Part shown: piece after piece, positions 14,314 through 53,843 of the stretch | Numbering within the stretch: position 1 is the first letter of the stretch | Layout of the letters: each line of letters begins with the position of its first letter | Origin: Epithemia pelagica | Lineage: Eukaryota; Protista; Bacillariophyta | DNA: 64,000 nucleotides | Direction: 5' to 3' | Assembly (NCBI GenBank): GCA_946965045.2 | Contig: OX337232.1 | Location: 1,674,001 to 1,738,000 of the forward strand | Made by a program: the position numbers and the translations under genes | The notes under the pieces: model-generated | Database searches by the model: none | Told to the model about the DNA's origin: nothing | The model's input: only the letters and a program-made list of their open reading frames with translations

Positions 14314-14364
14314 AAATTGAAACCGCCAAGGCGGTATAGGACGGCTGAGTTCAGTATCCGTCGT
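14314..14364 (-). mobile_element. Helitron2/Helentron-type 3' terminus (copy X)
   Basis: 14314-14357 matches 46557-46600 at 43/44 nt. On the minus strand it reads ATACTGAACTCAGCCG, then hairpin ACCGCC-TT-GGCGGT, then TTCAATTT. Confidence 0.8.
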
Positions 14365-16823: not shown

Positions 16824-16843
16824 GATTAACAGTCTCAACGCTC
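16824..16843 (+). other. Primer-binding site complementary to a tRNA-Asn(GUU) D/anticodon arm
   Basis: GATTAACAGTCTCAACGCTC is the reverse complement of GAGCGTTGAGACTGTTAATC, and it starts immediately after the LTR. Confidence 0.65.
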
Positions 16844-17327
16844 ATTGCCCTGCAGTCGCATTGGAGATCATACTTACCCATCTACATTGAGTACAGATTG
16901 AGCTACACCAACAAACGAGAGTTAGAGGACAAAGCTACCCAACCCAACAACAGGGCCAGCCTGGCTAAGGCTAGGGTCATCAACCCTCTCCTATTCCAGG
17001 ACCTCAAGCTGGACCAGGACTTCGTGCAACTACCTTCCCAATACTCACCTGACCAGTACTTTGCTGAGGACTACGAGCAAGACGAGCAAGCTACCATTAT
17101 TCCTGACTCCCTGGTTCAACTCGATCACCGCAACGAGTCCGGAAGTGACCAAGGATAAGTATCTTTAAGTGGTTTCCACAACAAACCAGAGACAAAACCG
17201 AGTTCCGCACATCCGGGTTCCCAGCACAACACACATCCGGGTACTTACATACGTGGCACACACGTGGTACATCCGGGTTCAGATCACACCACACATTAAA
17301 TAAACAACGAACCAACCATATACTACC

Positions 17328-20300: not shown

Positions 20301-20697
20301 TTGCAAGACAAGAACTCAAGGAATCAGGTCACATCTTGATTACGCACAAGGCCTCAAAGGGATTAAAATCTTCAGGAGCATGTCGGCGTGACTGTTTCTT
20401 TGACATCCCACTTGATATGGATTTGTCACCAACTAAAGCAGATCCCAATGTTTGGATGAAGAAGGCACCTGGGGAGCATAGCTCAAAGGGCACCGACAAG
20501 ACCTACCAACTGAAGAATGATGAACTGATTACTTATTGCCTGAGATATCCCTATGAGAGCGTCCGGGATACATTGTCAGTAAGCATTGGAAATTCTCGAA
20601 AGTATGGACCACGTTCAAGATCATATTCTTCTGGGGAGGAAACGTTCAGAAGCATGACAAGGAAAATAACAATCCTCACTCGACAAATTGTGGGGAG
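17328..20697 (+). pseudogene. Deleted gag-pol remnant (overlapping ORFs 17328-19436 and 19217-20722)
   Basis: Keeps Gag blocks (RMTFLMKAVEKVPDLR, CYQSYFRLLLDAAYDHDQAT) and partial pol (VDWETGE, KYKFGYQV, GLKSSGA). The protease DRGANGG, integrase core, RT YVDD and RNase H are absent. Confidence 0.85.
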
Positions 20698-21463
20698 TGT
20701 TAGGATTCTCACCTTTAACTAGGTGGTGGTGGAATCTACAACACATCGACTGATGCTAGTATTTTATGGCATCCGATGACATTTGTGTAAAAGTGAGAAA
20801 AGAATGACGGCATGCTCGCGGACCTTTAATTTTGGCCAAGGCATGCTCGCAATGCACGCGCTATCGGCGACCGCTCGGATATTGACTATGGCCCATCACG
20901 TGCGCGCCCAATATTCTCAAGCGCGCGCAATCAAGATCCGAGTGAGCACCTCCACGACTTACCTCAACGACCTAAGTAATCAAAGCACGAATCACAATCA
21001 CGCGAGACCATATTTCCATTCCCACAATTCCAAGAATGCAATCAACAACGCGCCAAGAAAACTACCTATATCACAACAAAGCAAGAGCTGTTGGCATTGG
21101 TATATGATATACAACTGCATATACTTTCAATACAACAATGCAGGTCTACTCCAACCATTTGAGGACCTATCACACCAGATCCATGGCCGTATACAAGAGC
21201 CAGGACCTCGACCTTCATCAAACACCTTAGTTAGTAATCATCTCACAATCATTAATATCACCATTTTAACACTCATCTTAAGACTAACCTCTTATCAGTG
21301 GACCGACTGCCCCCACCCACGGCGGACTTCGACTTGCAACTCTTCTCTGACCCGTGGAGGATTGTTGTATCGGTTGGTGATTCGATTGTCGGCTCAGCGA
21401 GCCTTTTACCTATCCTACCCAACTACCTATTACCCTTCTGAATTCTCAATGAGAGTTCTGTCA
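20698..21463 (+). repeat. 3' LTR of copia 1
   Basis: Follows the PPT and is followed by TSD CGACA. Confidence 0.95.
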
Positions 21464-23445
21464 CGACAATGTAGTGGCCTGCACCGGTGTTGCAACTGGC
21501 GCCGAGGGCAGTGAAGCCGCTCTGGATGATCTCTGTATCACGGCGGACAATGTGGTGGATTTTGTCAACTTGTTTTTTGGTGGTTCTTCGGTAGTCAGTC
21601 CCGAATTGGCCCAACACATTCAAGAGGAGAGTGGAGCCGATACTTGTTTTACACGGACGGAATTTGAGAACTTGTTCCAGTCATCCTTGTCTGCCAACAA
21701 CAACCAGACCTCCTTATTGTCGGGTGCGAGTGTGACACTGTCCATGAATCCGTTCTCACTGGTGTTTGGGATTGGAATGGCCATGATGGTGTTTGGTCTC
21801 TCCTAAGTGCTAGGTCAGCCACAGTCGAAGGATCTACTATGTTGAATCTAATTCAGAAGTAACCATGTTTTTGTTTGTCTTCATGTTCCTGCCGTACAAG
21901 TATTTTGAAAAAGTTGAGTATAGGTTTCCTTGTTGATGGATAAGAGGGTAATACCTTACATTCCAGCAATGTCCAAGTACGTCCTCGGCCTCATCCAATC
22001 TGCCCATGAATGCCTTCAAACACAAATAGTCACTATCATTGGCAAAAATCACAACATGATATTCATCGCTTTGAATGCCGGCACTACCATTGTCGTAGAC
22101 AGGGAGATGAAGGACTCGCCTCTACTAGATAGAGAGGTATTAGTGGTAGTGGATGAGCCCACATGAACTAGAGATTATGTGATGTTTGCAAAATTTCCCT
22201 GCTTTGAATGCGACATCATTACTCTAGTTCATAGCAAGGGAACCATGAATGGTTGGACTGGTTCCAAACTACTAAGCTCGCCAGAACTTATCTATCCCGC
22301 AAACATCCAAACGAGGGCGAAATCCTACGATTACTATTGATGAGGAAAGGGTAGCTCGAGATGCACCTTGCATTCGCTCGTGTCCCCATGACGATTCCAC
22401 TTCCACCGAATACGCGTGGAGTGGAGTCGCTACCAGTAGTCGCTAGACGATAGCGAATGGTAGCGATGTTTTTGCCCCGCACTTTTCTGTTCCCCAACCA
22501 AAACCACAAGAGAGAGGGATATCTACGCATTATCGCCGCCAAATTATGGGGGAATGAGAGAGAGAACATGGTCAGCATGATGGCGGCCAATGATTGATTT
22601 AGGATTGTTTTGCCATGGGCCAACCATGAAGAAACAACCACAAGGTCCTGCTGAGGAGGGTCGTTGACCATACGAACCGACCTCATATACTCCTCATCAT
22701 TTTGGATCATTGTTGCTAAAAGAAAAAGAAGGAGAATGATCGAGGCTCGTCTTGTCCTTTTTGCCATACCACCACATCTTGTTGTGATGCGGGTTCTTGT
22801 TTCACCACCACCTCTTAGGGTGACGCTGCAGCAACTGGTTCGGCTCGGTTTGGTTCACCACCATTCTTCGATTACGGGACGAGTAGTACTCTGGAAAGGA
22901 CCAGGTCAGGTCTGTGGAGTCCTTTCCTTGTGGTTTTTTGGCAACTCGTGGAGGATTCGCATCAAGGCTTTTTTGTTTTGGGCCGTGGTACCCGTTTGTT
23001 GCAAGCGATCCAACACAATGTTGCGCAGATTGCTGGACAAGGCTCGATCCAAGGCTTGCACGTGCAATTGTTCGACACCAAAGGTTTGAAACCACCAGGA
23101 CCAACCCAAGGGAGGATCATGGTTTGTACGAGTGTCTGTTTTGTGATTGTAGTACTTATTTGAATGGCAATTGCCTCGTCGTTTCCCACCCATGGCAGTA
23201 ATACTCCTCACCCACGATGACGACGCCAGTGTCACGGCCCGCACGACAGCCACCTGTGTCGCCGCACCAGTCGGTGCTTGCAGGCGAGACCAACATTGAA
23301 ACTGCACAAATTCACAGGGTGGCAATTGTCGCACCACTTGCGAGCGAGAAAGAAGAGTCGCTTTTGTACTGACATGGCTGCTATGGCTGATAGGAGGATT
23401 CTCGGACGAAAAGGACCAGGACAATGATCCTGTTACGGCATCCGT

Positions 23446-24228
23446 TGTTACAATTCTTTTTGAATCGTAGGGACATTGATGCTCGGTAGAGCAGACAATC
23501 AGGTAGGTCACCAACCGATACAAGCTTCTCAGGGTCAGAGAAGCAAGCAAGTCGAAGTCTATCAGAAGGATAGTCGGGACACAAAAGAAGATGTGATAAA
23601 TGGTGATATTGTTAGATTGTGTGTTGATTACTACAATAGGTCTACGTGAAATGTTCGGTCCTGCCAAGGGTCATGTATCATAGGTTCTTGGCGGCAACAG
23701 GTTTGGAATAGTTGGAGTCAATTCATGTGATGTATATGACATGTATATGTGGACGGATAACATATACAGGGTCAACAGCTCTTGCTTTGGGTTGGCATAG
23801 TTGTTTTCATGGCGCGCAGCTTGTTGACAATTTGGAGATTGTGGGAATGGAAATATGGTCTCGCGTGATCGTGTGTCGTGCTTGGGATACTTAGACCGTT
23901 GGGTCGGATAGATGCCGACAGCGCTCGGATGTTGCTTGGGCGCGCTCGATGATTTCGGGCGCGTACGCTTAGGGCGTTAGTATAATGTCCGAGCAACGGC
24001 CAAATTTACGTCCGTTGTAATACCGCACGACCCAGTTTAGTCTTGAGAGTGAGTTCGTCAATCTATTCTCACTTTTCATGATTTGCGAAGAAATATAGGT
24101 CGATATAGCGCGAAGCTAGGGAACATAGCTCGAAGCTAAATGGCATGATGCGATAGCACGAGGCTATGTGACATGGGGAATCGATGAGATGTAGAATCTA
24201 ACCACCATAGACGGTGAGAATTCTAACA
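23446..24228 (-). repeat. 3' LTR of copia 2
   Basis: Near-identical to 31047-31829; I found two differences. Confidence 0.95.
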
Positions 24229-27200
24229 CTCCCCACAACTCGTCGTTTCAGCCTTGTCATCATTGGATTTGTTGAGGTCTTGAACTTCTCCTTTCCAAAA
24301 CAACAATGGCTTGAGCATGGGCCAAATAGATACAAAATCCCAATGTTTGCTAAGGATATCGGCAGGGTTGGTCTTTCCATCTTTCCAGTAGAATGCAACA
24401 TACTTTGCTGCGATGGCTTCACGAACTCGGTGGTATGACAGAAGATGGTGTCTCTTGGATAGTATGGAATGAGGAACGGTTGCATTGAGCACAACAGATC
24501 TGTTATCTCCGTACATGTAACTTCGCTCTCGGATAGGTACTCCAAGGTAGCGGAGGGAATGTCGTAATTCTGTAATCTGATCTATTGCTGTCCTTGCAGC
24601 CACAAACTCGGATCCATAGGTAGCAGTTTCCACCGTGCTCTGCCTCTTGCTGTACCAGTCAATAGGTGTTCCGTTCAACAAATGTAGAACAGCAGTGACG
24701 GATTTACCAGTGACTATGTCATGCATGAGATTGGCATCAACATAATGAGTTGTGGTAACATAACGGCCAAGAGGTGTTGGGCAGTCTTCAGGAATACGTT
24801 CACTTGCATTCGAATAGACAGTGCGAGTCCAATCAAATTCTTGGGTAGGAAGACTTGAATAATCAGGCTCTCCAATCCTTAATCTGATTGCGCCTTCTGG
24901 GAGATGTGCAAGGTATCCATAGATACGCTTGGCTCTATCAAGATGTCCTTTCCTCGGAGCAGCACGAAAGCGTGATAGCGTCATTGTAGCGGTGAAGACG
25001 TCGAAACGACCAATAGTGATCACCCATTGGAGTTGTCCAATCAGAGTTTGGAAATGGCTAGTACCTTCTTCATCAAGGAGCTCAGAATCATCCAATTCAG
25101 GATGGTCTCCACCAATAAGAGGTGTTTTGGCTTTCTTGGGTTTCTCCTTGAAGATTCGTTCGAAAGTGTCCATCATCTTACCAATGTAGCGTCTTGGATC
25201 TGCTACTAATGTTCCATCAGAATCCTTGGTGTAACAACATCCCAAGTGGAAATCAATAGGTCCATCTCCTTTGAGTTTGAAGTTGTATTTCTCCTTCAGG
25301 ATCTTGCAGATATTCCCAGGATCAGTAGAAATAATGGCTAAGTCATCAACGTATACGGCAATGTATTCGTAACAGTCTTCTCCAGGTGCTTTCCTCATCC
25401 AGATATCCGGATCTGCTTTGCTTGGTGAAAATCCCATGTCTGTCAAAACATCGAATAAGACATCATGCCAGGGTGCGCCTGATGACTTCAATCCATAAAG
25501 TGCCTTGTATATAATCAGGATGTGACCTTCTAATTCCTTGAATTCAGGTCCTGCGACAATGAAAATTTTCTCCCCTGTCAAGGCTTCCAGATATGCGTTC
25601 CCAATATCTGCTCCCCATATTTCCAAGTCATTCAAAGTACCCAGGAATAAGGCAATGCGGAGGTTGCGAATGGAAACAACACCTGAATAGATTGTCTCAA
25701 CAGGTTCTTTTGTGAGATGTCCATCTGCGACAAGTCTTGCTTTATGTCGTCCATCATGTTTTACGTCAAAGACAAGATGTACACGTATCTTATGATATCC
25801 TTCAGGTGCATTGGATACTTTCCCTTTAATGAAGATGGCTTTCCCAAAATCCTTGAATGTCTTGTAGGACTGGATCTGTGACAATTCTAATTCTGTTGCA
25901 TCCTGCCACTTTGTGTTGCCATGTTGTTTATCAAGAGCGACAGCTTCCTCATAATTGCGTGGTACTTGGTATCCAAACTTATACTTGACGGAACGGTGAA
26001 CTTGTTTAATCCTTGACTGTTTGGCTGCTCGAATGAGACGTTTGCTTGTTTTGACGTAACGTTTCAAATGCTTCCATCCAGGTTTGTTGAGTAAATCATG
26101 TTTCTTTCCATAAATTGCTACAGTGATCGGATCATCATTGGCAATGAGTGATAAAGGTTCATAGGTAGTCTCCCCAGTTTCCCAATCAACAAGCAAATTA
26201 TATTTGCTCCCCTTGTAATCTGGATCAGTTGTGTTCAGTGGGCCTTGATGGGCAATGACGTCCCTGAACCTGAAAAGATTATCTCCAGAGGTTTGAGCTT
26301 GGTTATCTCGTTCGATATACTCCATGAGTTGATTATAGGATATCATCTCATCAACATCAGAATTTGTCTTTCGGTAGATGTACTTGACACGTTCTTCCTG
26401 TTTCGTTGCTTCTTCATTAAGATCAATGACTCGTTTGATGACACGTGCACGGTGTCGCTCCCCATTTTCTTCTGTGTCGCATAGGAATGTGCGTCCTATC
26501 ATGTCGTCAAAATCGATCGTGGGCATTGGTTTGGATGGATCTTCACTATCACTGCGAATGAAGACAGTGTCAGCTTGCTTATCATTGTCATCCTTCTCAG
26601 ACGAATCCTCCCCTGAAGGTCGATCCACACGTAGGTTAGGTGTAGTGGATTCAACACGGCAAACGGCAGAACGGTAGATGATCTGGTTATCCTGGGTGAG
26701 AATCTTCCAAGTAAAAGAATCACCAACGTTGTGAGCAAAACCAACCCAGTGGCCAAGTTTCTCATCAGAAGAAGATGGATATGAACCGGAATTGGGTTCA
26801 GCGGGGTCGACACGGTAGTAAACCTCATCCCAGAAAGGAAAGAACAAGAGATGAGTAATGTCGGGTGGGCGTCCGGAGAGAGCCTCAAGAGGAGTGCGAC
26901 CGGAATGGGTGGGTGATGATGTATGGTTCAATAAGTCACAGACATACTCAAGGCAAAGAAGCCAGGTGTTGGCAGGGCAACCAGTGGCATTCATGAGAGC
27001 GTTGGTCATACGTTTAACGGTCTGGTAACGGTTTTCAGCCTTATTCTGGTGTTGATGATAAGGTTCGGATCGATACTCCCCAATAAGCAAAGTGCAAAGA
27101 ATGTCTTTGACCTTTTGAGAGATGAGAGATGAACCACCATCACTGATAAGAGTCTCCATGGCACCACGAAAACGGATGTTGTCCTGAAGAGTATTGACAA

Positions 27201-29910
27201 ACTGTTTGGTTGACTTGATCCCATAGATATCAGTAACCAGAGTATCTCAACCAACAAAGATTTGTGCAACTTTACCACCATGGTCAACAGCAGGGGTGTC
27301 GGAGAAAACCGAGTCAGTAGCAACGGGTTCATGGCGTCGAGGTATATTAAGGACCGGATTGCGAGCCTTGAAATGTTTCTTGAGGGTGTCGTGGTCAAAA
27401 GTAATGCTACCATTACGTGTAGTGTGCTTGAACGTATCGGCAATAACATCTTCAGATTACCAACCAAAGAATGGACGGAACTTCTTCCAGTCATACGCTT
27501 CCTGGTAACGACGGTGGACAGAGGCATGAAGTGTAGGATCATTACCTTCTGCGTCAGCATAGATAGAAAAGAAGGGTGCGTCGTCAGGTCCATGATCGTA
27601 TGGGAGATCCAAAAGGAGATTGAGGTTACAAACAACACGATCAGTGTACTCCCCATAGTTGTCATATGGATGGTTCGACATACTACCATCAGTCTTGACG
27701 TGTTTCCAATCAGGATCATTGTCAGAGGGTGTGGGAGAATACGAATGGTCCAGAACACCAGGATCCCATGTGTCGGGTGACGTGAAGATGATCTGAGGTA
27801 AGGTATCCATGTCATCGTCGCTGGGGATACCCAAGGAGTGGATGTAGGCTAACCCATCCTTGATGTGAAGGGGTATAGCACGACCATCAAGTGTAGTGAT
27901 GCGTTGTTTACCATCAACTTTAACAGATCGTTCATCAACAGCAAGTCCGAAATGCTCGAATTGACCAGGAGCATGGATAGATAAGCCCTTTCCATAATAA
28001 GCATATTCATTGAAGATGCCAACAATAGGTCCATCATTGGTCTCAAACTTTGCGGCACATGTGACGACAGGAAGTCCAGTAAGTTCATGGTGATCAATAC
28101 CCACAATAGTGATATGGCGGCCAGTCTTAGAGAGAATGCGCATGTCAGAACCAGCAAGTCCTCCATTAGCACCACGGTCAATCAATTGATTTCCTGGTAA
28201 AGTAGATTTCCTGGAAAACAAATAGCGTGGAACATGTCCTGCTTGTTTATGCATGTTGGCTTTGAAAGTAACCTTCTTGCTCGTCTTGGACTTGGCGTTA
28301 GAAAGAACACTAGTCAGGTCAGTTGCCGGGTGATTGATATCAGTCGTCATGGCTTGGTTGATAAATTGTGTAACCGGATCTGAATCATCTGGATGCTCAG
28401 GGACTACGCCAGGTGAGTCGTCATCAGATGCAACTTGGTTGGGGTCAGGATCAGGTTCCGGATCAATGTCGAGGGCATGTGTTTGCACTTTCCTCGGTGT
28501 TGTTGATGAAGGTGTTTGAATCATTTTGTTATACTCAATGATCAACTTGCGATCTTCTTCAGAAAGTTTGAACCATAGGTCACGCGGTAGACTAACCTTG
28601 GACGAAGAGGATGGAGATTCAGATGTCGCTGTGGTGTTGTGGACATGATACTCCATATCATCTTGTGAGGTTATGTCAGCATCTGTATCTTGGCCATATA
28701 GTGATTCATGTTGTTTGACATGTCGACGGCAACTATGAACAGATGACTGGGTTGCTTGATCATGGTCATAAGCTGCGTCTAGAAGGAGACGGAAGTATGA
28801 TTGATAGCAAAGGGATTTTGCACCGGATTTGGTGTTCACCACATTATCCAAGATCTTGACTCGGCGGAGATCAGGTACCTTTTCTACAGCTTGCATGAGG
28901 AAGGTCATCCTGGTATGATCAGGGATGCAATCAGACAATGTCACTAGATTGTCTAGCAAACGTAGCTGCTCTTGAAAGTGTAGAAGAAATTGACGTGTTG
29001 TTCCGCGCCATGTGTCGTCAAGACGTAGATTGGAAATGTAGTTGGTTAAACGGAGGACTTCTTGCTTTGCTAGGTCGGATTCGGTATGCAAAGAGTGTAA
29101 CTTCTGCAATACGGCACGCGCATCTTCATCATGTTCATGTTCACGTACATAGGCTCGACCTTGGTCAGTCTGAATGATACGGACAAGAACAGAGTAAAGA
29201 AATACTTGTTGCTCTTGAAAAAGTTCTTCGGCATACTCATCATCATGGGGTGGTGTGTATTTGAAATTCAGAACGTTGGATAGGCCTTGAGCCTTAGCTG
29301 TAGTCTTGAATACACGCCAGAATGAATCGTAGTATCGTTCATCCTTGAATACCTCATATGCAGTTGCGTCGCGCTTAGTTCCCTTTCTGAATGCGGTAAG
29401 GTCTTGTTGAGATTGGGATGCGGCAGTAACTGTGCTGACAGATTTCACAGATGACGGTGACTTCATTGGCGAGACTGGGACTTGGCTAGGTGGTCCCTTA
29501 GAGAAATCTGTGTTGATCCTCCAAGTGTTGAACTCTTTCCTCGTTAGATTCATCCAGTCGCTATTGGATAGCTCGTCTTGAATTTCATTGGTCTTGTATA
29601 TGGCCCAATAAGCCAAGAGCTTGATCTGCTGTCTTGTGGGGCCTTGTAGATCATGTGTCTGTTTGTTGACCTTGTATTGTGTCAGTTCCTTCATGGATTC
29701 CTCGGTATTAGTTTGCATATACGAGATAACATGGGTAATGTTCTCAAAACCATGGTATTTCATCCACTTCATTAAGAAGTCGGCCCTTTCTTTGGTAAAG
29801 AATTGGCAGACAGTAAATATGATGTGGTCGAATAGGTCTGTGTCCGAGATATTGTCTTGGTTATCTTCTCCCTTAGGAGTCGTAGGTGTCTTGGGTGATT
29901 GAGAATCCAT
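24223..29910 (-). pseudogene. Single-frame gag-pol with two premature stops
   Basis: Protease LIDRGANGG, integrase SEPYHQHQNKAENRYQTVK, RT YIAVYVDDL, RNase H HYVDANL and ATYGSEF. In-frame TAA at 27457-27459 and TGA at 27247-27249; the frame is open between them. Confidence 0.92.
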
Positions 29911-30230
29911 GGTGTTATTTGGTTGGTTCGATGTTTATTTAATGTGCGGTGTGATGTGGTTTATTTAATGTGTGATGTGATGTGAACCCGGATGTACCAC
30001 GTGTGCCACGTATGTACCACGTATGTGATACCCGGATGTGTGTTGTGATGTGCGACTCCTGGAAATTTCCGTTGATTCCGACAAATTTTCGCCGAGTTTC
30101 AACAAATTTTCGCCGAATTTTCGCGATTTGACGGGAATGTGTGGCGTGTTGTGCGACCAAGGGTACCCGGATGTGCGTTGAGTTTAAGTCTTGGAAAGGT
30201 TTTGAGAGGACGGGAGTTAACTATGAGTAA

Positions 30231-31010
30231 TTAAGCTTCGGTCTCCGAATCCCCACTCTCTTCCGAATAATCAGAGTCGTTTCCAGGCTCAGATGGGGCA
30301 GCACAAGCAACAGAAGAAGGGGTATCACCTTCAGCCAGGTGGTTCTCGACCTCGGTACGCAAAGGGAAGATAGTTGCACGATGGTCCTCGATGGTATGGA
30401 CCTCGTGGATGTAGGCAACGTAGTTATCTAGGCGTACAACGTTAGGAGGCAGAGGGCAAGTCGTCGCGTTCACGACGTGGATGGTATTGTAGTATCCAGT
30501 TGGGCGCTTGAAGGTTAGGAAGCGGAGGTGGACAGTACGGATGGGGTTGCCCGAGAGGGCGGCCAAGATGAGGCGACGCCTCGGAGAACGATGAAGTTGG
30601 TCGTTCAGACGGTCAATGTCTTCTTGGTCGACGATGTGGGTCACCGATTGGAACTGACGTTCGATCTGGGTCTCCCCACGGATGATCTCGGGATCGAAGG
30701 TCGAACAAGTTGGTTGACGGAAGTACTTGATATGATCAGCAATCAACCGGGTGGTACGACGGGATCGAGAAGGGACGAGCCGACAAGGCGGACTCGGGGG
30801 CCGAAGCAACGGCGCAGGGATCGGAGCGTGAGGCTGGGTTGGAGTCTCGAATGGGTTGCTGTTGGAACTGTCGACGGAGATGTTGACCGATGTGTTGGCT
30901 GCCTTCGGCGTCGGCACCAGTTCCTGCTGCACCAGGGTATCGGGCTGCCCGGGATGCAGTTTGGCTCGATAGATCTGTCGTACAGGAGTGATAAGCTCGT
31001 TAGTATCCAT
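30231..31010 (-). CDS. Extra 259-aa ORF between PBS and gag of copia 2, function unknown
   Basis: ATG 36 nt downstream of the LTR, sense to gag-pol, uninterrupted. Confidence 0.6.
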   Translation of the reverse strand: MDTNELITPVRQIYRAKLHPGQPDTLVQQELVPTPKAANTSVNISVDSSNSNPFETPTQPHAPIPAPLLRPPSPPCRLVPSRSRRTTRLIADHIKYFRQPTCSTFDPEIIRGETQIERQFQSVTHIVDQEDIDRLNDQLHRSPRRRLILAALSGNPIRTVHLRFLTFKRPTGYYNTIHVVNATTCPLPPNVVRLDNYVAYIHEVHTIEDHRATIFPLRTEVENHLAEGDTPSSVACAAPSEPGNDSDYSEESGDSETEA

Positions 31011-31026
31011 GAAACCACAAGGAAAT

Positions 31027-31046
31027 AAGCTTTGAGACTGTTAATC
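31027..31046 (-). other. Primer-binding site of copia 2 (tRNA-Asn anticodon-arm complement)
   Basis: The plus strand reads TGAGACTGTTAATC directly against the LTR; 15 nt are identical to the PBS of copia 1. Confidence 0.65.
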
Positions 31047-31829
31047 TGTTACAATTCTTTTTGAATCGTAGGGACATTGATGCTCGGTAGAGCAGACAAT
31101 CAGGTAGGTCACCAACCGATACAAGCTTCTCAGGGTCAGAGAAGCAAGCAAGTCGAAGTCTATCAGAAGGATAGTCGGGACACAAAAGAAGATGTGATAA
31201 ATGGTGATATTGTTAGATTGTGTGTTGATTACTACGATAGGTCTACGTGAAATGTTCGGTCCTGCCAAGGGTCATGTATCATAGGTTCTTGGCGGCAACA
31301 GGTTTGGAATAGTTGGAGTCAATTCATGTGATGTATATGACATGTATATGTGGACGGATAACATATACAGGGTCAACAGCTCTTGCTTTGGGTTGGCATA
31401 GTTGTTTTCATGGCGCGCAGCTTGTTGACAATTTGGAGATTGTGGGAATGGAAATATGGTCTCGCGTGATCGTGTGTCGTGCTTGGGATACTTAGACCGT
31501 TGGGTCGGATAGATGCCGACAGCGCTCGGATGTTGCTTGGGCGCGCTCGATGATTTCGGGCGCGTACGCTTAGGGCGTTAGTATAATGTCCGAGCAACGG
31601 CCAAATTTACGTCCGTTGTAATACCGCACGACCCAGTTTAGTCTTGAGAGTGAGTTCGTCAATCTATTCTCACTTTTCATGATTTGCGAAGAAATATAGG
31701 TCGATATAGCGCGAAGCTAGGGAACATAGCTCGAAGCTAGATGGCATGATGCGATAGCACGAGGCTATGTGACATGGGGAATCGATGAGATGTAGAATCT
31801 AACCACCATAGACGGTGAGAATTCTAACA
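31047..31829 (-). repeat. 5' LTR of copia 2
   Basis: Minus strand TGTTAGAATTC...TGTAACA. A central block is shared with the copia 1 LTR. Confidence 0.95.
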
Positions 31830-32922
31830 TCCGTTTCGTCTCCCCGCCCACGATCTGTACTGCTCCTGCTTGTCCTGCGGCTGCTGCTTGTCGGCAAATG
31901 ATGCGGCCAGGTTCCGACATCATAACCAATGGTAAAGGCAGCCGATGGACACGAGGTCAAATACGAGGCTGTGGAAGAAACAATCCTTGAGTTAACGGAA
32001 TGGGGCTTGTCGTCGTCCTCCTCTAAATCACGTTCTGGATGTGCATGTGTTGGAGGTCGTTTCTTGGCATAATTCCAAACATAGAAGCGACTAGCAGTAC
32101 TCGAGGAACGATTCTCTGGAATGTCCTGTTGGTTCTTCTTTTTCTTCTTGCTGGTGTGCTGTTGTCGCTGGTGATGGTAGTTGTTTGGATGCAACCCTCC
32201 GTGCTTGTTTCCGTGATTGTTGCATTCGTAGATTGGGCACAGCCTCGGGCACGACCATTTTTCGTCCAGTCGTGGTCGTTGTGGCCGCTCGTCAATAATG
32301 ACGCTGTGTGACTCAACGTTTGTCGCATGGCGGAAGGAGAAGAACGACCACGCGATCTTCGACTGCCACCACAGCTCCACGGTATCCACTCGAAGCAGCA
32401 GCAGCACCGCCACCATTGTCGCCGACAACAGAAGCTGTGTCGTCGTCTTCTGACAGATACTTCCTTGATGCTTCAAAACCACCCGTCTGATTGCCGTGTT
32501 TCAATTTCCGGGTCGTCCATCATTCCTTGACCCGAATTGAATCTTTCTCCGTCGTTCCTCCGTTGAGATCTTTATCTTTCCATCGTTATCTTTCTCCATT
32601 GTTGATATTCTTGTCACGACTTTCCCTCATCACTCATCAAACTGGAAGACATTGCAAATGTAGTTGTAGCTCGATCAAACTATCCAACTCATTGCCGCCC
32701 TTTTCAACCTTCACGGTACACTCCATTCTGAGGCATGCTTGATGGTCGGAGGAGTGCTAGCACCTTTCGTTGGAGGTGCACTGCGGCTTTACTGTTCATG
32801 GTGATGGTGGTGCTATTAGCTATTATGCATTGGTGCGATCGTGAGCCGGGAGCTCGTAACGTCATTCAACGTCAAATTACAGGCATCGACAGAAAAATGG
32901 CTTGTAGAGGTCATAGATTGAT

Positions 32923-33212
32923 GGTTGGGAGTCTTACATTATTACTAACGATACGTCAAGGGTGAGTCGCCACTCACATTTTACGCGGTTGGAGGTGCAC
33001 CTCCAAATCATACCATGACTGACCATTAAAATAATCATTGCTATATCATTGCCATATATATTTAACCGTTTTATCAACCGCCATGTTTGCTCAATTGTAC
33101 TTTTTACTCTATTGTCCGTCCGTTTTCGGTACAGCTGGTCTTTCTGGAAATTCCCACCCCAGACCCCAAGCCTTACGGCCCACCCGTCCCGTTCATACTG
33201 AACTCAGACGAA
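32923..33212 (-). mobile_element. Helentron 5'-terminal region (copy A)
   Basis: High identity to the 50350-50786 and 53233-53669 repeats over about 32970-33212, weaker further left. On the minus strand it begins TT-CGTCTGAGTTCAGTAT. Confidence 0.75.
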
Positions 33213-45924: not shown

Positions 45925-46457
45925 TTATGATTTCCCCACACTGGATTTATGTTCTTCCACTCTTTTCCTCAATTCTTGCAGATCTTTCTCCTTTTCTTGT
46001 AACTGCTGGCGTTTCTCGAACTTTGCTGGCTGATAGTATAAAACTATCAAGTATCTGCCACCAACGTTGAAACCAGAAAGATGATCCACTGCTGCTTTGG
46101 CGTCGTATATATCCTGGAAAACAGAGAATATGAGCAACACCAGACGAAGACTATATACGTGGCTCGGAGAAACTTACTTCGTAAATGACGAACGCCGTTC
46201 CCCGGGTATCTTTATCTTTGTCACCCAGCCGTATTTGATAAATTGCTCCGTATTTTCCAAAAATCGCGTAAAGTTCGTCAGCCGTTATTGAAAATGGCAG
46301 GTTTCGAACATAGAGAATTCTGTTGACCTCGGGCGGGAGACGTGACTGGATGCAGGAAACATAAAATGAGTTTCGTTTCACAGAGAAAGCATGCAGAAAA
46401 TTTTCCGTGAGAAAGAATCCTTACATTGTGAGATTTCCTTGACGTATACTCGCTCAT
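45925..46457 (-). CDS. SF3B6: Splicing factor 3B subunit 6 (p14); exons 46457-46425, 46345-46178, 46113-45925
   Basis: [53 protein letters not shown]; canonical GT-AG introns. Confidence 0.95.
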
Positions 46458-46661
46458 TTTGTCTCTTTCAGGACGGGTTGAAGGAAACTCCTGCCCCAAC
46501 GACGGCGAGCACCAGCGTATAGGTATAGTGTATGGAGACAAGGCGACCAAAACTACAAATTGAAACCGCCAAGGCGGTAAAGGACGGCTGAGTTCAGTAT
46601 CAGTAGTACAGTGGACAGGACTATTCTATTTATCCTTGGCAGCACTTCCTAGAAATGAAAG

Positions 46662-47372
46662 TTAATTATGTCTTTCATCGAGCTGAACCGCGGGTGGCGG
46701 ACGTTTAGTTGTCCGGAAATGTACATGAAACTCTTTACATTCAGCAGACATTCCACGACATTTGTCGGCTATAAGTGGTTTTGCAAGGAAAAGGCCTTTG
46801 AGCTGGCAAACTCTCGACAAACAAACAAAGTTCCAATTGCCCGTGTAGTCCCAGTTCGATATGTAAAGAAATTCGATTGATCTCCCTTGTAGCTTATGAA
46901 CAGTCCTTGCATTGGACACATTGAGAGGAAGCTGCGTCATTTTCATCGTTTTCCTCACTCGTTTCATGCCAAACATGGGGAGTGGGAACTGCACTTGTTG
47001 AGTAACAGTCTGAGGCTTCAAAAGAACAACATGATTCTGGTTTCCATCAACCATTTTCACCTTGATTCCCTCGATTTGAGTGACCTTAAGACTCCAAACA
47101 TAATATCCATCAATCAATATTTTCTCCAAATCAGATAATGTCACCCCTTGCTTAAGGAGAACGCCATTGAATTCACACATGGCTCCATTAGCAATACATG
47201 ACTCAACGTCTTTGTTTTCATTGATACACAACGGTCTTCCATAATACAGTTTCAAAAGTGGATCATATCTCTTGTTGTCCCGTCCTTGCAAGTGACCCTC
47301 ACCACAGGTGGCATATAGGATATCTTCACTTGCCTTGTTGAAACCCCAAAGTTTGGATTGCGTTTTTAGCCT
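46662..47372 (-). pseudogene. C-terminal fragment of a PIF1-family (RepHel-type) helicase
   Basis: TQLPLNVSNARTVHKLQGRS and FVCLSRV match SF1B motifs V and VI. The frame closes upstream of 47372 and no Rep HUH domain was found. Confidence 0.8.
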
Positions 47373-48426
47373 CTTTTAGTTCCATGTAGCTCTTCAGGAT
47401 TGTGAGATGGAACATATAAATTATACATGGAAATTTGAGTCTAGTAATAAGCTTTCGATCTATATAATTTTTAGCGCGAACGGGCTGACGCTCGAGACGT
47501 TATTTCATTTTTCTCAACTTCGTGCGATAAAAAAAGGCCGAGCTCTATTGTGCCTAAAATAGAGGCACTACCTGCGTGCACCAATTGAAACCTTAACCCT
47601 AATGATACTATTCCATAGTGCTGACCAGCAGTTTTCTCCAACCTGTTGCGGTGTATAACCAACCAACCACCTCTGGATGTGGTTCTGGATGTGATGCCGC
47701 ATACAAGGCGGCCGAATCATCCAGTCGTTGCATGAAATTGTCGTGGACGTCATCTGGATTGCTCCTGGGAGGAGGAGCATAATCATTGTTGTTGTCGGTT
47801 GATGGGCCCTCGTTTTGTTCACAATCCCTCCAACAAGATGGAGTGCTCTGATTTCCAACGATTGGTATCTCTGTGTTGCTGTGCAGTCGCTCTCTCGATC
47901 TCTTGGTCGAACAGAAGTCAACCAACCTCTGACTGAGCTATCGACGTCTCTCGTGTTTGTGTGCAAAGTCCAACAGCCAACAGCCATCACACAAGATCCT
48001 TGTCTGTCCTTGTTCACGCTTTTCCTGCACCGGCGGTGTCAAAGTTGTTGTCAAACGTCGAACCGCCTCTCTTGCCATAAATCTTTATCTTCCAAGATCC
48101 CACTTTTATCATCACCATCATGTTCAAGGCCTTTTTGCTGCACAAAACTCGACCAATGATTGATCCATTCCAAAGCAGAACTGACACAACAAATTTCGTT
48201 TCTCCGAGTTGGCCAAGGGAAACAAACCAGACATGTGCACGGTGCACTTTCCTCATTGTGATCATCCTCGTGCTTACAAACGAGATCATCCCGACAAAAA
48301 GGTGACCAATGGAGTATTTTCTTGTCCAGAAGCCGTCGAAATTTTATTTCTTCTCCCTTTGCCCTCATTGTGCGAGCCATGGTAAATTCTGGGGAAGGGC
48401 GTGATTGGGCTCATTACCAGAGTGCA

Positions 48427-49148
48427 AGATGCTCATATCCATCGACGAGAGTAGTTACGATCGTGTGCGTCTACAGAGCCTGCTTTCATTGGCGGGAAAG
48501 TGATACTCCTATGTGCATCTGAATCTTAGAATGTAGAGAGCCCGCCAACAAGAAAGAGTACTCTGAGACCATAGACAAGAGCCAAAACAAGTAAGAGTAG
48601 TATCGGTCTGTTGAGTCCTAGTTCGAAAGCAAAAGTTCCCTTAATAGAGGAAATTTCTACTCCTATATCCATTTGAATCTTAGCATGTAGAGAGCCCGCC
48701 AACAAGATGGACTTCTCTGATTTCCATACACAAGAGGCAAACAGATGCTCATATCCATCGACGAGAGTAGTTACGATCGTGTGCGTCTGCGGAGCCTGCT
48801 TTCATTGGCAGGAAAGTGATACTCCTATGTGCATCTGAATCTTAGAATGTAGAGAGCCCGCCAACAAGAAAGAGTACTTTGAGACCATAGACAAGAGGGA
48901 AAACAAGTAAGAGTAGTATCGGTCTGTTGAGTCCTAGTTCGAAAGCGGAAGATCCCTTAATAGAGGAAATTTCTACTCCTATATCCATTTGAATCTTAGC
49001 ATGTAGAGAGCCCGCCAACAAGATGGAGTTCTCTGATTTCCATACACAAGAGGCAAACCAGTGAGAGTATTGGTCTGTTGAGTGCTGCTTCCAAGGCCAA
49101 ACATCCCGTAATAGAGGAAATTTATACTCCCATGTGCATTTGAATTAC
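48427..49148. repeat. Hierarchical tandem repeat: 2 x 316 bp plus a partial unit, each built from two ~158-bp subunits
   Basis: Units start AGATGCTCATATCC at 48427 and 48743. The core TGAATCTTAG(A/C)ATGTAGAGAGCCCGCCAACAAGA occurs four times. Confidence 0.9.
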
Positions 49149-49319
49149 AAATAGCGATGGGAGTATACCATGAAAACATTTTTCTCGGTTCTTGAACGGT
49201 TCCAATTGGAGAAGTGTTGAGGATCGAGAAAACACGATTTTCTCGATGCAGCCTAATCTCCTCAAGCCAAGTCCAACAATCAACTCATATTTCCTTCCTC
49301 GACAAACAACATCCGCATC

Positions 49320-50184
49320 ATGACTCCACCAGCGAAAAAGGCAAGTTTGATTGTTGCGTCGTTCTATCACTACATGGCATTCATCCATGCTCACCTTTCT
49401 TTTTTCTTCTCCTCACCAGGAAACAATCAAGAAGTTCAAGTTCACGGCAACGAAGAAGAAAGGTGTTGCTCCTTCTCCGAGTAGATCGAAGCCCAGGGTC
49501 TCTGAGATCCATTCGGAGCGTTGTGGCCCTAACTCACAGTTTATTGTTGCTTACATGAAGCTCGCAGGGACCAAAACAGAGCGGTCGGGATACATGAATC
49601 CTGTATTTGATCTGATTAAAGAAAAGGAAAAGTGACTTTTTGATGAGTTTGATGTGCGAATTCAAAAACTGTATCGTCGTCTCTCACCTGAGAAGGATGA
49701 ACCGATGATGAATGGCAACCCGGACAAGTCCGGAACCGAATACCCCTGGCCGTGCGTTGTTGGATTCTGTGACGACGCTGACGATGACACAAAGAAAAAG
49801 ACTCTGACCAAAAATTTGTGTAAGACCATTGCCGAGGTGATGGAGAAGAATGACAAAGAACACGGATACAATCGCACTTACAGCTACAACACTCCTGACT
49901 TGGATCACACCGGCAATATTCCTCGCCCTTTGGATAATCTGTTTCAAGATGAAGAAGTCAATGCTCTTGTTCAAAACTACTTCGAACTCGGTGATGACAA
50001 TGATCTGTTCACCTATCTTGGTGGCGAAGACGATGGTGTGGCAGACCAGGCTTTTTCGCGTGATGAATACGGCATGTACTCCAGAAGTGCAGTAATCGCT
50101 GGAAATACCCGACTGGTAGGCTCCAAGACAACAAAGTCGACGAGAAGGAGTCCGAAGAAACGACCCCTGAGAATTGATTTGTGA
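49320..50184 (+). pseudogene. Unknown spliced gene inside the Helentron (GC-AG intron 49341-49419; in-frame TGA at 49633-49635)
   Basis: MTPPAKK/ETIKKFKF joins in phase 0 across AG/GCAAGT...polypyrimidine-CAG. ORFs 49351-49635 and 49654-50184 share a frame. Confidence 0.55.
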
Positions 50185-50349
50185 TATGTGTACTGAAATA
50201 CAATATGAGTGCCAATCGAGAGATATAAGGGCTTCTGCTTTTATCGTATACCAATATGCTATTATCAATAACACGTGCATCCTGGTCAGCAGAACGAACG
50301 AAGAAAAACAAAATTCATAATATATGCTTTCCTAGTCAATTTATAATTC

Positions 50350-50786
50350 TTTGTTGCTGTATGATGATAATATGAATTTAACTCTGCCGTCGTAGCGATT
50401 CATGCCCGTTATCGAACACAGCAATTCTCTCTAACGTCTTGCTACCTGTTCCTACGAGCTTTCAAACAAAAAGTCTTGTTTCAGTCATTCCAGAACGGTT
50501 GGGCGTCTTACATTACTACTAGAGATTCGTCAAGGGTAAGTCCCCACTCACATTTTACGCGGTTGGAGGTGCACCTCCAAATCATACCATGACTGACCAT
50601 TAAAATATGCATTGCTATATCATTGCCATATATATTTAACCGTTTCATCAACCGCCATGTTTGCTCAATTGTACTTTTTACTCTAGTGTCTGTCCGTTTT
50701 CGGAACAGCTGGTCTTTCTGGAAATTCCCACCCCCGACCCCAAGCCTTCCGGCCCACCCGTCCCGTTCATACTGAACTCAGACGAA
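50350..50786 (-). repeat. Helentron 5'-terminal 437 bp (copy B)
   Basis: About 5 differences from 53233-53669. Contains the palindrome TTGGAGGTGCACCTCCAA at 50563-50580. Confidence 0.9.
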
Positions 50787-50903
50787 TACCAACAACGGGA
50801 AAACCTCTAGATCCAAGAAAGCCTCATGCTTTACACTATAGGCGACGAAAATACTTGTTGGTTTTGTGGTTTGTGGTTGCCGCAAGGTGGAATGATGGCT
50901 TTT

Positions 50904-53195
50904 CTATGTTTTGCTTCGATAGCGACGACGAATCCAGTAATCCTGTTCATGATAATTATGCTTCAAGGACAATGAGTCTGTTTCCATGAGAGCGTCATTG
51001 ATGTAGTTCACAGCATCTTCCCGACGTTCCATCGCCAAGGCTTGTTCTTCCTCCATTCGCTCTTGATAACTGGGCTCATTATCGTCATCATCGTCATTGT
51101 CCACTTGATCCAGGTCACTGGTATCCGCAACTTGATTGGGAAATCGACGTTGCACCCAAAAGTACAAATCCACTTGATTGACAATGGAACACAAGTTGGA
51201 CAAATCATCAAACGAGTCTGCTGGGTTGGGCTCGTGGGACGACAATGGAATATACTGTACATTGTTGGCCACCGAATGGGCGTAGCGACGGTGGGCCTTT
51301 TTGGATTGTTGACTCCCCAAAGAGACGGGAGAGATGCAAAACATGTACTTTTGCTGCAAGGGCAGGTCCACATCCTCTAGTAACTGGGCTATTTCCATCA
51401 TGCTTTCGCTTCTTCTCAAGAAGTAATCACCTTCCACATTAGCCAGTTCCGCAAAACTCTTCAACACGTGATACAAATCGTTCCGTCGTGGCGACACTGA
51501 GCCTTGCCCCCATTGTGACGTGTTGTTGGTGATTGTCAACTTGTTGGTTGTGTTGTCCTCCTTGTTGCTGGCATCCAGACCAAAGTCGTACTCACTGGGG
51601 TGATCGCCTTTGTGCATAAGACCAGTCGTTTCCAATGTATCACGAAAGGCTTCCAAATGATCCGCCATGGGCATGAGCCCTGCCTTGGTAATGGGGCCAA
51701 TATCCGTTTGAATGCAGGTTTGAATGTATTGAATGTCGTTGTCGTCACGACATGTCACAAATCCCTGTGGGTAGGGACTGTTGCGACGACCGGCCCGGCC
51801 ACCAATTTGTTTCACATCGTTGTGTGTCAATCGAATAATGCTTGTTCCATCGTGTTTATAAATAGTATGAAAAATGATGCGTCGAATGTTGAGATTCAAA
51901 CCCATGCCAACGGCATCACTCGCCACCAAAATCTCATATCCAGAGTCCGGGTCATTGAACAAACGGGCTTGTTCCGCTCGTGTTTGAGGAGGCAAAGACC
52001 CATAGACGACACAACAACGAAACTTTGTCCTGGACTCAATCTCTCGCTTCACGGCAAAAATATCTCTTCGATTAAATGCCACAATACAGTCACCTGGCCG
52101 GACGGATAATGCATAGGGATATAATTGCACGTCATCTTGGTGTTTTGGGTTCCTTTTGTTGGTTTTCGTTTTCTTGGTTTCCTTGTTGGACTGGTTTGCC
52201 TCTTCATCCTGTAGTTGCCACTGTTCCCATTGCTGTTGCTTTCGATACAAGGCAGCTTGTAAACTGTGTGACTCAACCTGCAAGGGTGTAAAGCGTTTGT
52301 AGGTACGGAGTTCAAAGTCATCGCCGCATTTTTCCTCCACTAGTTTACGCACCAGATCCACCGCTTCGAGGCCACCACACACATGAATTTCAGAGCAATT
52401 CAAGCCCAAGAGGGCACGGGTCCAGGCAAACCCTCGTTCGGGGTCGGCAATCATTTGGATCTCATCAATCACCACGACCGAATCCGTATCATTGTCCTGT
52501 TTCGTGTTGCTGGACGGTTTCGGGGTGGTTCCGTTTGCGGCCTCTTCGTCGTCTTCCTCCTCTTCTGTGGGCGGTCGAGTCGATAACCGTGTTCCCTTGA
52601 GGAGGGGATTGGAAGCACCATTGTAGGCCATTTCAATGGTTGCCGATCCATGCGTGGCGCCCCGCATAACGCGTCGCTCTTGTCCCGTGTACAAATTGCA
52701 TCGAATGCCCTTTTCCGTCATCGTGTCATAGACCTCTGCCGCCAAGAGTCGAAGGGGGCCATAATACATGCCCGTCGCGGCCTGTTCCAATCGTTGCATG
52801 GCTTGATAGGTTTTTCCACTATTGGTCGGGCCGCCATGGTAGATAATGCGCCGTGGTGTGGGCCGATTCCGTACTTCGGGGAACCATTCGTGTGGTTGCG
52901 TCAAATCGGCCACGGCATCCAAGGCACGATATTGACGCAACAACCCGGCATGGACGGTACCAATGTAATCTGCCATGATGCGACAGATTGTTCCCTTGAC
53001 CTCATCGCTTTGCAACACCGCATTGGTTTTGGCAAACAACTCTGGAGTGATACCAAGGCGTTTGCCCAATTTCTGAACCAACCCCTGCAACTGTTGTCGT
53101 CGAACATTGCAGCTCGACGCTTTACGGCGCGTTTGTTTCAAGCTTTTCCTTTGGACTCGAACTTGATGATCATATTCACGTTTTAGTGCGTTCAA
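50904..53195 (-). CDS. SUV3: SUV3-like mitochondrial RNA helicase, apparently 5'-truncated
   Basis: DLTQPHEWFP, YHGGPTNSGKT, YGPLRLLAAEV, IDEIQMI, ASDAVGMGLNLNIRRI, QIGGRAGRR. There is no upstream in-frame ATG before the repeat junction. Confidence 0.85.
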   Translation of the reverse strand: MNALKREYDHQVRVQRKSLKQTRRKASSCNVRRQQLQGLVQKLGKRLGITPELFAKTNAVLQSDEVKGTICRIMADYIGTVHAGLLRQYRALDAVADLTQPHEWFPEVRNRPTPRRIIYHGGPTNSGKTYQAMQRLEQAATGMYYGPLRLLAAEVYDTMTEKGIRCNLYTGQERRVMRGATHGSATIEMAYNGASNPLLKGTRLSTRPPTEEEEDDEEAANGTTPKPSSNTKQDNDTDSVVVIDEIQMIADPERGFAWTRALLGLNCSEIHVCGGLEAVDLVRKLVEEKCGDDFELRTYKRFTPLQVESHSLQAALYRKQQQWEQWQLQDEEANQSNKETKKTKTNKRNPKHQDDVQLYPYALSVRPGDCIVAFNRRDIFAVKREIESRTKFRCCVVYGSLPPQTRAEQARLFNDPDSGYEILVASDAVGMGLNLNIRRIIFHTIYKHDGTSIIRLTHNDVKQIGGRAGRRNSPYPQGFVTCRDDNDIQYIQTCIQTDIGPITKAGLMPMADHLEAFRDTLETTGLMHKGDHPSEYDFGLDASNKEDNTTNKLTITNNTSQWGQGSVSPRRNDLYHVLKSFAELANVEGDYFLRRSESMMEIAQLLEDVDLPLQQKYMFCISPVSLGSQQSKKAHRRYAHSVANNVQYIPLSSHEPNPADSFDDLSNLCSIVNQVDLYFWVQRRFPNQVADTSDLDQVDNDDDDDNEPSYQERMEEEQALAMERREDAVNYINDALMETDSLSLKHNYHEQDYWIRRRYRSKT

Positions 53196-53232
53196 CTGAA
53201 TCCGTTTTATCCCCGGGGAATTGTATGTTTCG

Positions 53233-53669
53233 TTTGTTGCTGTATGATGATAATATGAATTTAACTCTGCCGTTGTAGCGATTCATGCCCGTTATCGAAC
53301 ACAGCAATTCTCTCTAACGTCTTGCTACCTGTTCCTACGAGCTTTCAAACAAAAAGTCTTGTTTCAGTCATTCCAGAACGGTTGGGCGTCTTACATTACT
53401 ACTAGAGATTCGTCAAGGGTAAGTTCCCACTCACATTTTACGCGGTTGGAGGTGCACCTCCAAATCATACCATGACTGACCATTAAAATATTCATTGCTA
53501 TATCATTGCCATATATATTTAACCGTTTCATCAACCGCCATGTTTGCTCAATTGTACTTTTTACTCTAGTGTCCGTCCGTTTTCGGAACAGCTGGTCTTT
53601 CTGGAAATTCCCACCCCAGACCCCAAGCCTTCCGGCCCACCCGTCCCGTTCATACTGAACTCAGACGAA
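53233..53669 (-). repeat. Helentron 5'-terminal 437 bp (copy C)
   Basis: Direct repeat of 50350-50786. Confidence 0.9.
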
Positions 53670-53843
53670 CAATCTCTAAATAGAAGAATGAGATTCCTAT
53701 TTTGCCCCCCTTTACAAGTGCACCCCCAATAGAAACCCAAAACGCAAAAGGCGTACCCGTACACCGTACACCATACTCGTACACCCATACACCATCCATT
53801 TGCATGTGCGCTGCCCCTCTCCGGAAAATTTTGATTCTCGACG

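Follow-up and report, generated by a model that had tools for sequence, protein, structure and literature searches.

A putative Helitron2-type element family in Epithemia pelagica and a 7.1-kb composite insertion that carries a SUV3 copy

Organization of the locus

The window considered here is the whole 64,000-nucleotide stretch of the Epithemia pelagica genome that was analysed (assembly GCA_946965045.2, contig OX337232.1, positions 1,674,001 to 1,738,000). On its minus strand it contains a 4.2-kb Helitron-like element, el1 (46559-50786), which is adjoined by a truncated copy of the SUV3 RNA-helicase gene and by the 5′ end of a further element. An original prediction, made from the sequence alone, had placed a Helitron2/Helentron-type rolling-circle element at 46557-50786. 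The analysis described below makes it very likely that el1 is a non-autonomous copy of a young family of Helitron2-type elements, which belong to group 2 of the Helitron-like elements (HLE2), and that at this locus it forms part of a 7.1-kb composite carrying the SUV3 copy.

In el1, the 5′ end (left terminal sequence, LTS) and the 3′ end (right terminal sequence, RTS) are intact, and the interior is that of a deletion derivative: the first ~3.25 kb of an autonomous copy are followed by a 195-bp dispersed repeat and by the last 787 bp. The 5′ part (element positions 1 to ~1,690; 50786 to ~49096, minus strand) is 99% identical to the autonomous copies. It leads into central tandem repeats at 48427-49145 (a 154-bp unit repeated 4.2 times, with a 316-bp double unit repeated twice), whose units are also found in autonomous copies. 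The middle (48426-47540, minus strand) is collinear with and 99% identical to C9:1485741-1486627 and to four other autonomous copies. The dispersed repeat (47344-47540, minus strand) lies at the internal deletion junction and has at least 30 other copies, 85-100% identical, that are unlinked to the Helitron family; its borders, 47540 and 47343/47346, are also the points at which read contigs break off. The last 787 bp (47343-46559) are 96-99% identical to 10 other 3′ ends of what is here called family A, and they hold a remnant of a PIF1-type helicase C-terminus (46662-47343, minus strand). Judged from these alignments, el1 has lost ~8.4 kb and with it almost the entire transposase gene, and must consequently be moved in trans.

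Element termini, copies and target site

The two ends of el1 are asymmetric. Near the 5′ end, the subterminal inverted repeat CGTCTGAGTTCAGTAT is located at 50769-50784 (minus strand); it follows an invariant TT and is identical in 28 distinct copies. Its inverted partner, ATACTGAACTCAGCCG, lies at 46585-46600 and is complementary to it at 15 of 16 positions. On the minus strand, this partner is followed by TCCTTT, by the hairpin ACCGCC-TT-GGCGGT (46565-46578) and by TTCAAT, the hairpin being placed 5-6 nt before the 3′ end ...TTTCAAT and intact in 29 of 30 copies. The 5′ repeat is overlapped by a palindrome, GTTCA-GTA-TGAAC with an outer stem (50759-50784, minus strand), which has a predicted energy of -8.6 kcal/mol as single-stranded DNA (z = -3.8). 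The repeats (2 nt from the 5′ end and 26 nt from the 3′ end) are conserved in 28-30 copies. The original prediction was thus right about the positions of both 16-mers, of the 3′ hairpin and of the helicase remnant. Its count of five termini in the window was also borne out, as CGTCTGAGTTCAGTAT occurs five times with at most two mismatches (0.01 expected), three times as a 5′ end on the minus strand (53652-53667, 50769-50784 and 33195-33210) and twice as a 3′ end (46585-46600 and 14342-14357).

Copies of the family were sought in the 60.5-Mb assembly, which comprises 23 contigs. Matches to the initial 202 bp of the element number at least 40, with identities of 86-100%, and those to its final 71 bp at least 34. 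When coordinates were paired genome-wide, 29 distinct 3′ ends could each be assigned to a same-strand 5′ end that lies 3.7-19 kb upstream, and no 5′ end had an opposite-strand 3′ end inside 40 kb, so the termini co-occur elsewhere in the orientation that had been expected. In alignments of the flanks, similarity begins at TTCGTCTG in 28 distinct flanks and stops at ...GGCGGTTTCAAT in 30 copies, with a sharp loss outside both ends. Because the 30 3′ ends are alike only up to this point, the 3′ end of the element is at 46559/46560 (CAAT), which is 2-3 nt further in than the position 46557 initially proposed. At the other end, the leading TT (50786-50785) is invariant across the 28 flanks, and one of its two T may belong to the target. 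The mean pairwise identity of family-A copies is 98.9%, and the family seems to be young and recently mobile.

The bases that precede CGTCTG in 28 flanks are W, R, T and T, while TTTCAA is followed by T in 29 of 30 copies and then by T (16 copies), C (13) or A (1). From these 28-30 flanks and from three comparisons of an empty with a filled site, the target is WRT^Y, mostly T^T. The first comparison is provided by a subfamily-B element nested in a family-A element, where the empty site GCTCAAT^TCTCAG becomes GCTCAAT/TCGTCTG and TTTCAAT/TCTCAG. The second is the locus in the window, for which a public contig joining the outer flanks gives the empty site GATTGT^TTGTAG, and the third is the parental SUV3 site, GGTAT^TAGAAG when empty and GGTAT/TCGTCTG when filled. 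No target duplication was seen in the flanks or in any of the three comparisons. There is a likeness between W-R-T, which forms the left half of the target, and A-A-T, with which the element itself ends, and it would be consistent with the same nuclease cutting both.

Filled and empty haplotypes

Public contigs of four runs (X1-X4) from the same organism were aligned to positions 46000-51300. The units of these alignments are contigs rather than reads; minor variants are dropped in them and levels are not comparable. One X4 contig (4,730 nt) matches 46000-46559 minus two short introns and then continues for 30 letters that equal 53670-53697 save for a 2-nt indel. The whole of 46560-53669 is absent from it, and an empty site would be expected to read GATTGTTTGTAG. 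This contig carries G at 46499 and C at 46518, letters that hold 63/134 and 54/114 of the depth in X1 and X2, which are DNA-like runs. In addition, an X3 contig spans the filled 3′ junction. As the outer flanks are joined by a contig and single-nucleotide polymorphisms in the flank stand at half depth, the insertion looks hemizygous, and there are probably two haplotypes, one filled and one empty.

Alternatively, the junction 46559/53670 could be a product of RNA processing or a chimera of assembly rather than an allele of the DNA. X4 does look like RNA, and the joint is found in one contig only. Nevertheless, the skipped stretch is not bounded by GT...AG or AT...AC in any of the three possible phases, and the sequence common to the two sides amounts to 2-3 A, which is not enough to produce a k-mer chimera. 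Moreover, the contig has the alternative flank polymorphisms that are at half depth in the DNA-like runs, as well as the 2-nt indel in the far flank. An artefact of this kind is consequently improbable.

Immediately downstream of the insertion there is a host gene (46000-46560, minus strand), with introns at 46424-46346 and 46176-46113 and an ATG that is likely to be near 46457. In the contigs of the RNA-like run, only the letters of the empty haplotype were observed at 46499 and 46518, which hints that the filled allele of this gene is less expressed.

The composite insertion and the captured SUV3 copy

What is absent from the X4 contig behaves as a single insertion of 7.1 kb (46560-53669, minus strand, with a phase that is ambiguous by 1-2 T), composed of a 5′ end fragment, a SUV3 copy and el1. 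The outer 5′ end (53233-53669, minus strand) is the first 437 bp of a family-A element and is 98.9% identical to 50786-50350. The SUV3 copy (50785-53234, minus strand) measures 2.45 kb, is truncated at its 5′ side and includes ~117 bp of 3′ flank. Its open reading frame (ORF; 50904-53195) has 763 codons and matches the Pfam families DEXQc_Suv3, Helicase_C and Suv3_C_1, with the core and C-terminal domains intact. There is one other copy of 50785-53234 in the genome, at C3:75918-78358 (98.2% identity), whose flanks are unrelated to the window and to the Helitron family. Since the parental ORF on C3 has 1,228 codons, the copy in the window lacks the first ~465 codons and the promoter.

The homology between the two SUV3 loci stops exactly at the two element sequences. 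At the downstream side, from SUV3 to el1, the junction is a normal integration junction at the T^T site GGTAT^T of the parental locus. Thus, an element would once have sat just downstream of the parental SUV3. The upstream junction is inside the parental coding region and at position 437 of the element; it looks like a breakpoint and not like an element end. There is a precedent for such an arrangement in two ~14-kb copies on C2 (C2:1210889-1224990 and C2:5374502-5388481), which are at different loci with different flanks and consist of a 608-bp family-A 5′ end joined to a subfamily-B element minus its first 10 nt.

It might instead be supposed that el1 and the 437-bp 5′ end are independent insertions on either side of a resident SUV3, and that nothing was captured. 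Consistent with this, el1 has a complete 5′ end of its own and the SUV3 ORF is open over 763 codons. The locus on C3, however, has 465 more N-terminal codons and unrelated flanks, the homology between the loci ends exactly at the element sequences, and the contig that joins the outermost flanks removes all 7.1 kb together. Independent insertion is therefore very improbable, and capture of SUV3 within one composite is the preferred reading.

Contigs of X1-X3 over SUV3 carry the letters of C3 and depart from the window at 50785. At all five diagnostic SUV3 positions (50831, 50884, 50885, 51222 and 51231), a contig of X4 has the letters of the window, and it runs 28 nt into the 5′ end of the element. 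Consequently, the captured SUV3 copy appears to be transcribed. A bolder proposal, which is conceivable and rather unlikely, is that the family is still transposing and has moved a promoter-less, truncated SUV3 into the 5′ region of another gene, creating a new transcribed helicase gene without the N-terminal 465 residues and silencing the neighbour on the filled haplotype. If true, this would be gene birth by Helitron2 capture, seen while still polymorphic.

The parental SUV3 (L076, C3:74418-79858) encodes a low-complexity, Gln/Glu-rich N-terminal extension of ~465 residues before the helicase core. As for the C2 composites, one of them holds an ORF of 2,063 residues with an endonuclease domain, which is probably a nested retroelement of the non-long-terminal-repeat class.

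Transposase of the autonomous copies

The helicase remnant of el1 comprises an ORF of 209 residues (46662-47291, minus strand) that stops 61 bp before the 3′ repeat. Neither this ORF nor four other ORFs of el1 have a Pfam match. The remnant does match ten loci of the genome at 97-98% identity, several of them within long open frames, and it corresponds at that identity to the C-terminus of long ORFs that carry the PIF1 domain PF05970. The ORF was recognised as PIF1-type only through these full-length relatives. The closest of them in the genome are frames open for 1,347-1,692 residues that include Helitron_like_N (with HDH and YxxxY) and an N-terminal DUF6570. The remnant thus belongs to a fused Rep and helicase protein (RepHel) and not to a cellular PIF1, as had been anticipated.

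For the Rep domain, the genome was scanned in six frames for Helitron_like_N (PF14214). Matches were found on the element strand inside five paired elements of 11.6-13.3 kb, which have the size expected of autonomous copies: C9:1476400-1488998, C4:639627-652208, C4:2146039-2157683, C11:690221-702794 and C17:310584-323911. In the C9 copy, a single frame contains 447 codons with DUF6570 (PF20209, E 3.9e-20), one stop codon and then 1,393 codons with Helitron_like_N (PF14214, E 6e-18) and PIF1 (PF05970, E 1e-21). The motifs of the Rep part are VEEQGRKTLHDH, an HUH motif in the form HDH, and YMTCYISK, which has two tyrosines. Compared with solved structures, the helicase part matches PIF1 helicases at 7e-14 and Helraiser at 1e-7, and the Rep part has no phmmer match in PDB, Helraiser included. 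A whole-genome six-frame scan gave no match to the apurinic/apyrimidinic (AP) endonuclease family PF03372 inside any of the five autonomous copies. On the basis of these domain matches, the autonomous form is predicted to encode one protein of ~1,830 residues in which DUF6570, a Rep HUH nuclease and a PIF1-type helicase follow each other.

Elements of two further HLE2 families were met in the same genome. The second family (C10:394085-399703, C8:1569744-1575356, C16:387757-393369, C5:2818481-2824092 and C13:2233195-2238746) has a RepHel that is about 50-59% identical, with frames open for 1,668-1,983 residues, and is possibly intact. The third, with 65-78% identity, is on C2, C6, C10 and C17. 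Open frames of 1,893-1,983 residues are present among the elements of these two families.

Assignment to the Helitron2 type

Canonical HLE2s have inverted repeats of 12-16 nt at their two ends, the right one being followed by a stem-loop, and insert at T^T (PMC11417382). DUF6570 is reported to be specific to the HLE2 clade, and Helitron2 belongs to this group (Li et al. 2024, HELIANO, PMC11417382; a survey of 404 genomes). According to Thomas et al. 2014 (PMC4067079), Helitron2 itself has inverted repeats that are placed asymmetrically, a palindrome at each end and a RepHel that lacks an endonuclease. The family described here has the Rep HUH nuclease and PIF1 in one frame with DUF6570 N-terminal to Rep, the asymmetric 16-nt repeats, the 3′ hairpin and insertion at T^T without target duplication. 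It has no AP-endonuclease domain and would therefore be an HLE2 of the Helitron2 type and not a Helentron in the strict sense. The original prediction is supported, and its label Helitron2/Helentron-type is narrowed: termini, DUF6570 and RepHel agree with Helitron2, and the strict sense of Helentron was given up for lack of the endonuclease.

Several points weigh against this reading of the family and the locus. The class was assigned from domains and termini, and the Rep motif GRKTLHDH fits neither of the motif-2 signatures reported by Thomas et al. 2014 (PMC4067079), G-S-P-H in Helentrons and G-L-P-H in Helitrons. The phase of the cut is ambiguous by one T, such that TC...CAAT at WRT^Y and TT...CAA at WR^TY both fit. 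No copy in the assembly has an uninterrupted RepHel frame: that of C9 is broken by one in-frame stop, that of C17 by a change of frame and a duplicated stretch of 92 bp, and those of both C4 copies and of C11 by several lesions. The C9 copy, moreover, was read except for ~1.0 kb (C9:1485356-1485740 and 1486628-1487296) and a 117-bp gap. For the composite, the donor copy is absent from the assembly, the empty allele is seen in one contig of one run with 30 letters beyond the joint, and the status of X4 as an RNA run is deduced from two skipped introns and from the absence of the transposon interior.

Could the family be one of canonical Helitrons (HLE1) inserting at A^T? If the element is read as TT...CAA, A precedes it in 15 of 28 flanks and T follows it in 29 of 30, and there is a hairpin near the 3′ end. 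Nevertheless, the element does not have the ends 5′-TC...CTRR-3′, since its 3′ end is ...TTTCAAT, and the base before TT is G in the other 13 of 28 flanks, which does not suit an A^T target. The 16-nt subterminal inverted repeats and DUF6570 also speak against HLE1, as does the protein, whose Rep part finds no phmmer match to Helraiser and whose helicase part finds one of only 1e-7. This alternative is accordingly held to be most unlikely. A true Helentron with its endonuclease hidden in the ~1.0 kb of the C9 copy outside the sequence read is hardly credible, because the endonuclease of Helentrons is fused to the C-terminus of RepHel and only 61 bp separate the end of the present ORF from the 3′ repeat, with no Pfam endonuclease match and none to PF03372 in the scan of the five copies. 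Finally, a cut-and-paste transposon with terminal inverted repeats was ruled out by the absence of target duplication, the subterminal position and asymmetry of the repeats and the encoded RepHel.

Comparison with known systems

The preferred assignment to the Helitron2 type of HLE2 can be set beside the known systems. Helitron2 was first described in Chlamydomonas. The family shares with it the asymmetric 16-nt inverted repeats near both ends, a palindrome at either end, a stem-loop that follows the right repeat, one RepHel ORF with DUF6570 and without endonuclease, and a T^T-type target that is not duplicated. It differs in its host, a diatom-like alga, in motif 2 of Rep (GRKTLHDH), in the two or three conserved antisense accessory ORFs upstream of RepHel and in the target WRT^Y, where the cut is followed by C in 13 of 30 copies.

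Helentrons and their derivatives, such as HINE and DINE-1 (PMC4067079; oyster, PMC7492417), resemble the family in their subterminal repeats 2-3 nt from the 5′ end, in a 3′ palindrome a few nt from the end, in T-rich boundaries and in the capture of pieces of host genes, and the non-autonomous derivatives also have central tandem repeats (PMC4067079, PMC7492417). In contrast to Helentrons, the family has no AP-endonuclease domain, and its 3′ repeat is 26 nt from the 3′ end vs the 38-60 reported. The resemblance to Helraiser and HLE1 (Grabundzija et al. 2016, PMC4778049) consists of the RepHel architecture, the lack of target duplication, a 3′ hairpin as likely terminator and the mobilisation of flanking genes by mismatched ends. 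Unlike HLE1, the family lacks 5′-TC...CTRR-3′ ends and has inverted repeats and DUF6570; the proteins are barely alignable, and capture is on the 5′ side of a complete element instead of past a bypassed 3′ end.

HLE2s are known from 19 of 27 sampled phyla, so their presence in a diatom-like genome is not surprising, and what is known of this type of element is not changed by the present family. Full-text literature searches returned nothing that describes HLE2, Helitron2 or Helentron elements from diatoms. They returned no paper on the ends, target or transposase of diatom Helitron-like elements either, only lines in repeat tables. What is new here is the inserted unit 53669-46560 with its captured SUV3. 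The family combines exact boundaries, a target motif, autonomous and derived copies and empty sites, and it also offers a polymorphic, apparently hemizygous insertion with an almost complete host gene that can be traced to its parental locus. Together, these make it a clean natural case for the pick-up of genes at the 5′ side by group-2 Helitrons, and the family is a candidate starting point for a diatom transposon tool.

Proposed mechanism

The steps of transposition can be proposed by analogy with Helraiser. The Rep nuclease would nick one strand at the 5′ end of the element, and the helicase would peel the nicked strand off from 5′ to 3′ until the 3′ inverted repeat and hairpin mark the stop. 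The strand would then be inserted at WRT^Y, most often T^T, with no duplication of the target.

For Helitrons, there is a model in which an upstream 5′ end is used together with the 3′ end of a downstream element. A similar course may be imagined for the composite. First, an element would have integrated just downstream of the parental SUV3 on C3. Then a second 5′ end would have been joined within the SUV3 coding region, either by a deletion that truncated an upstream copy of the element or by repair synthesis, which would have begun where another copy was broken at position 437 and would have run leftwards out of the element into SUV3. Lastly, transposition from the outer 5′ end (53669) to the 3′ end of el1 (46560) would have moved all 7.1 kb. 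Mismatched ends of HLE1 are likewise known to move flanking DNA (PMC4778049).

Accessory reading frames and neighbouring elements

The autonomous element has two or three antisense accessory ORFs, of 258, 172 and 280 residues (L004:256-1032; L083:1447-1962 and 2206-3045). In el1, the first of these, acc1, is at 49319-50184 on the plus strand and appears to include a short first exon and an intron; the copy in the window has a nonsense codon at 49633-49635. The frame of 258 residues in L004 matches 49351-50085 of the window at 98.8%, and the protein identity of acc1 in two other HLE2 families of the genome is 57-60% and 32%. The frame of 172 residues (acc3) is conserved at 60% in one other HLE2 family. 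None of the accessory ORFs has a Pfam match above threshold, the one match below it being to DUF6060 (E 0.0097), and acc1 has no Atlas match. An AlphaFold model of acc1 from a 4-row alignment is of low confidence, with a mean pLDDT of 45.6.

A second element in the window belongs to subfamily B (14314-33212, minus strand). Its first 290 bp and about 50 bp at its 3′ end are shared with el1, and it is enlarged by a nested copia-type retroelement (RVT_2 ORF, 24223-27159).

Some family-A copies have an insert of about 1 kb at element position ~616. It was ruled out as a part of the family, as it is a separate miniature inverted-repeat transposable element (MITE) with inverted repeats of its own and an AAT duplication. 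This ~1.0-kb MITE is nested in three copies, on C11, C17 and at C5:1307994 (for instance L008, which is C11:701093-704294, and also L011 and L015). Its terminal inverted repeats are GGAACAYCGCGAAATTGC, the 3-bp target duplication is AAT and there is a tandem array of ~22 bp inside. It occupies the same CTCAAT^TCTCAG spot that is used by the subfamily-B element in another copy.

With regard to the host, the genome has at least 12 silicon-transporter genes, with E values down to 1e-226, which supports a diatom. Just beyond the 5′ end of the C9 autonomous copy there is a gene for a sigma-70-like factor with Sigma70_r2 and r4 domains (L004:1827-3134, minus strand), presumably a sigma factor of the plastid that is encoded in the nucleus.

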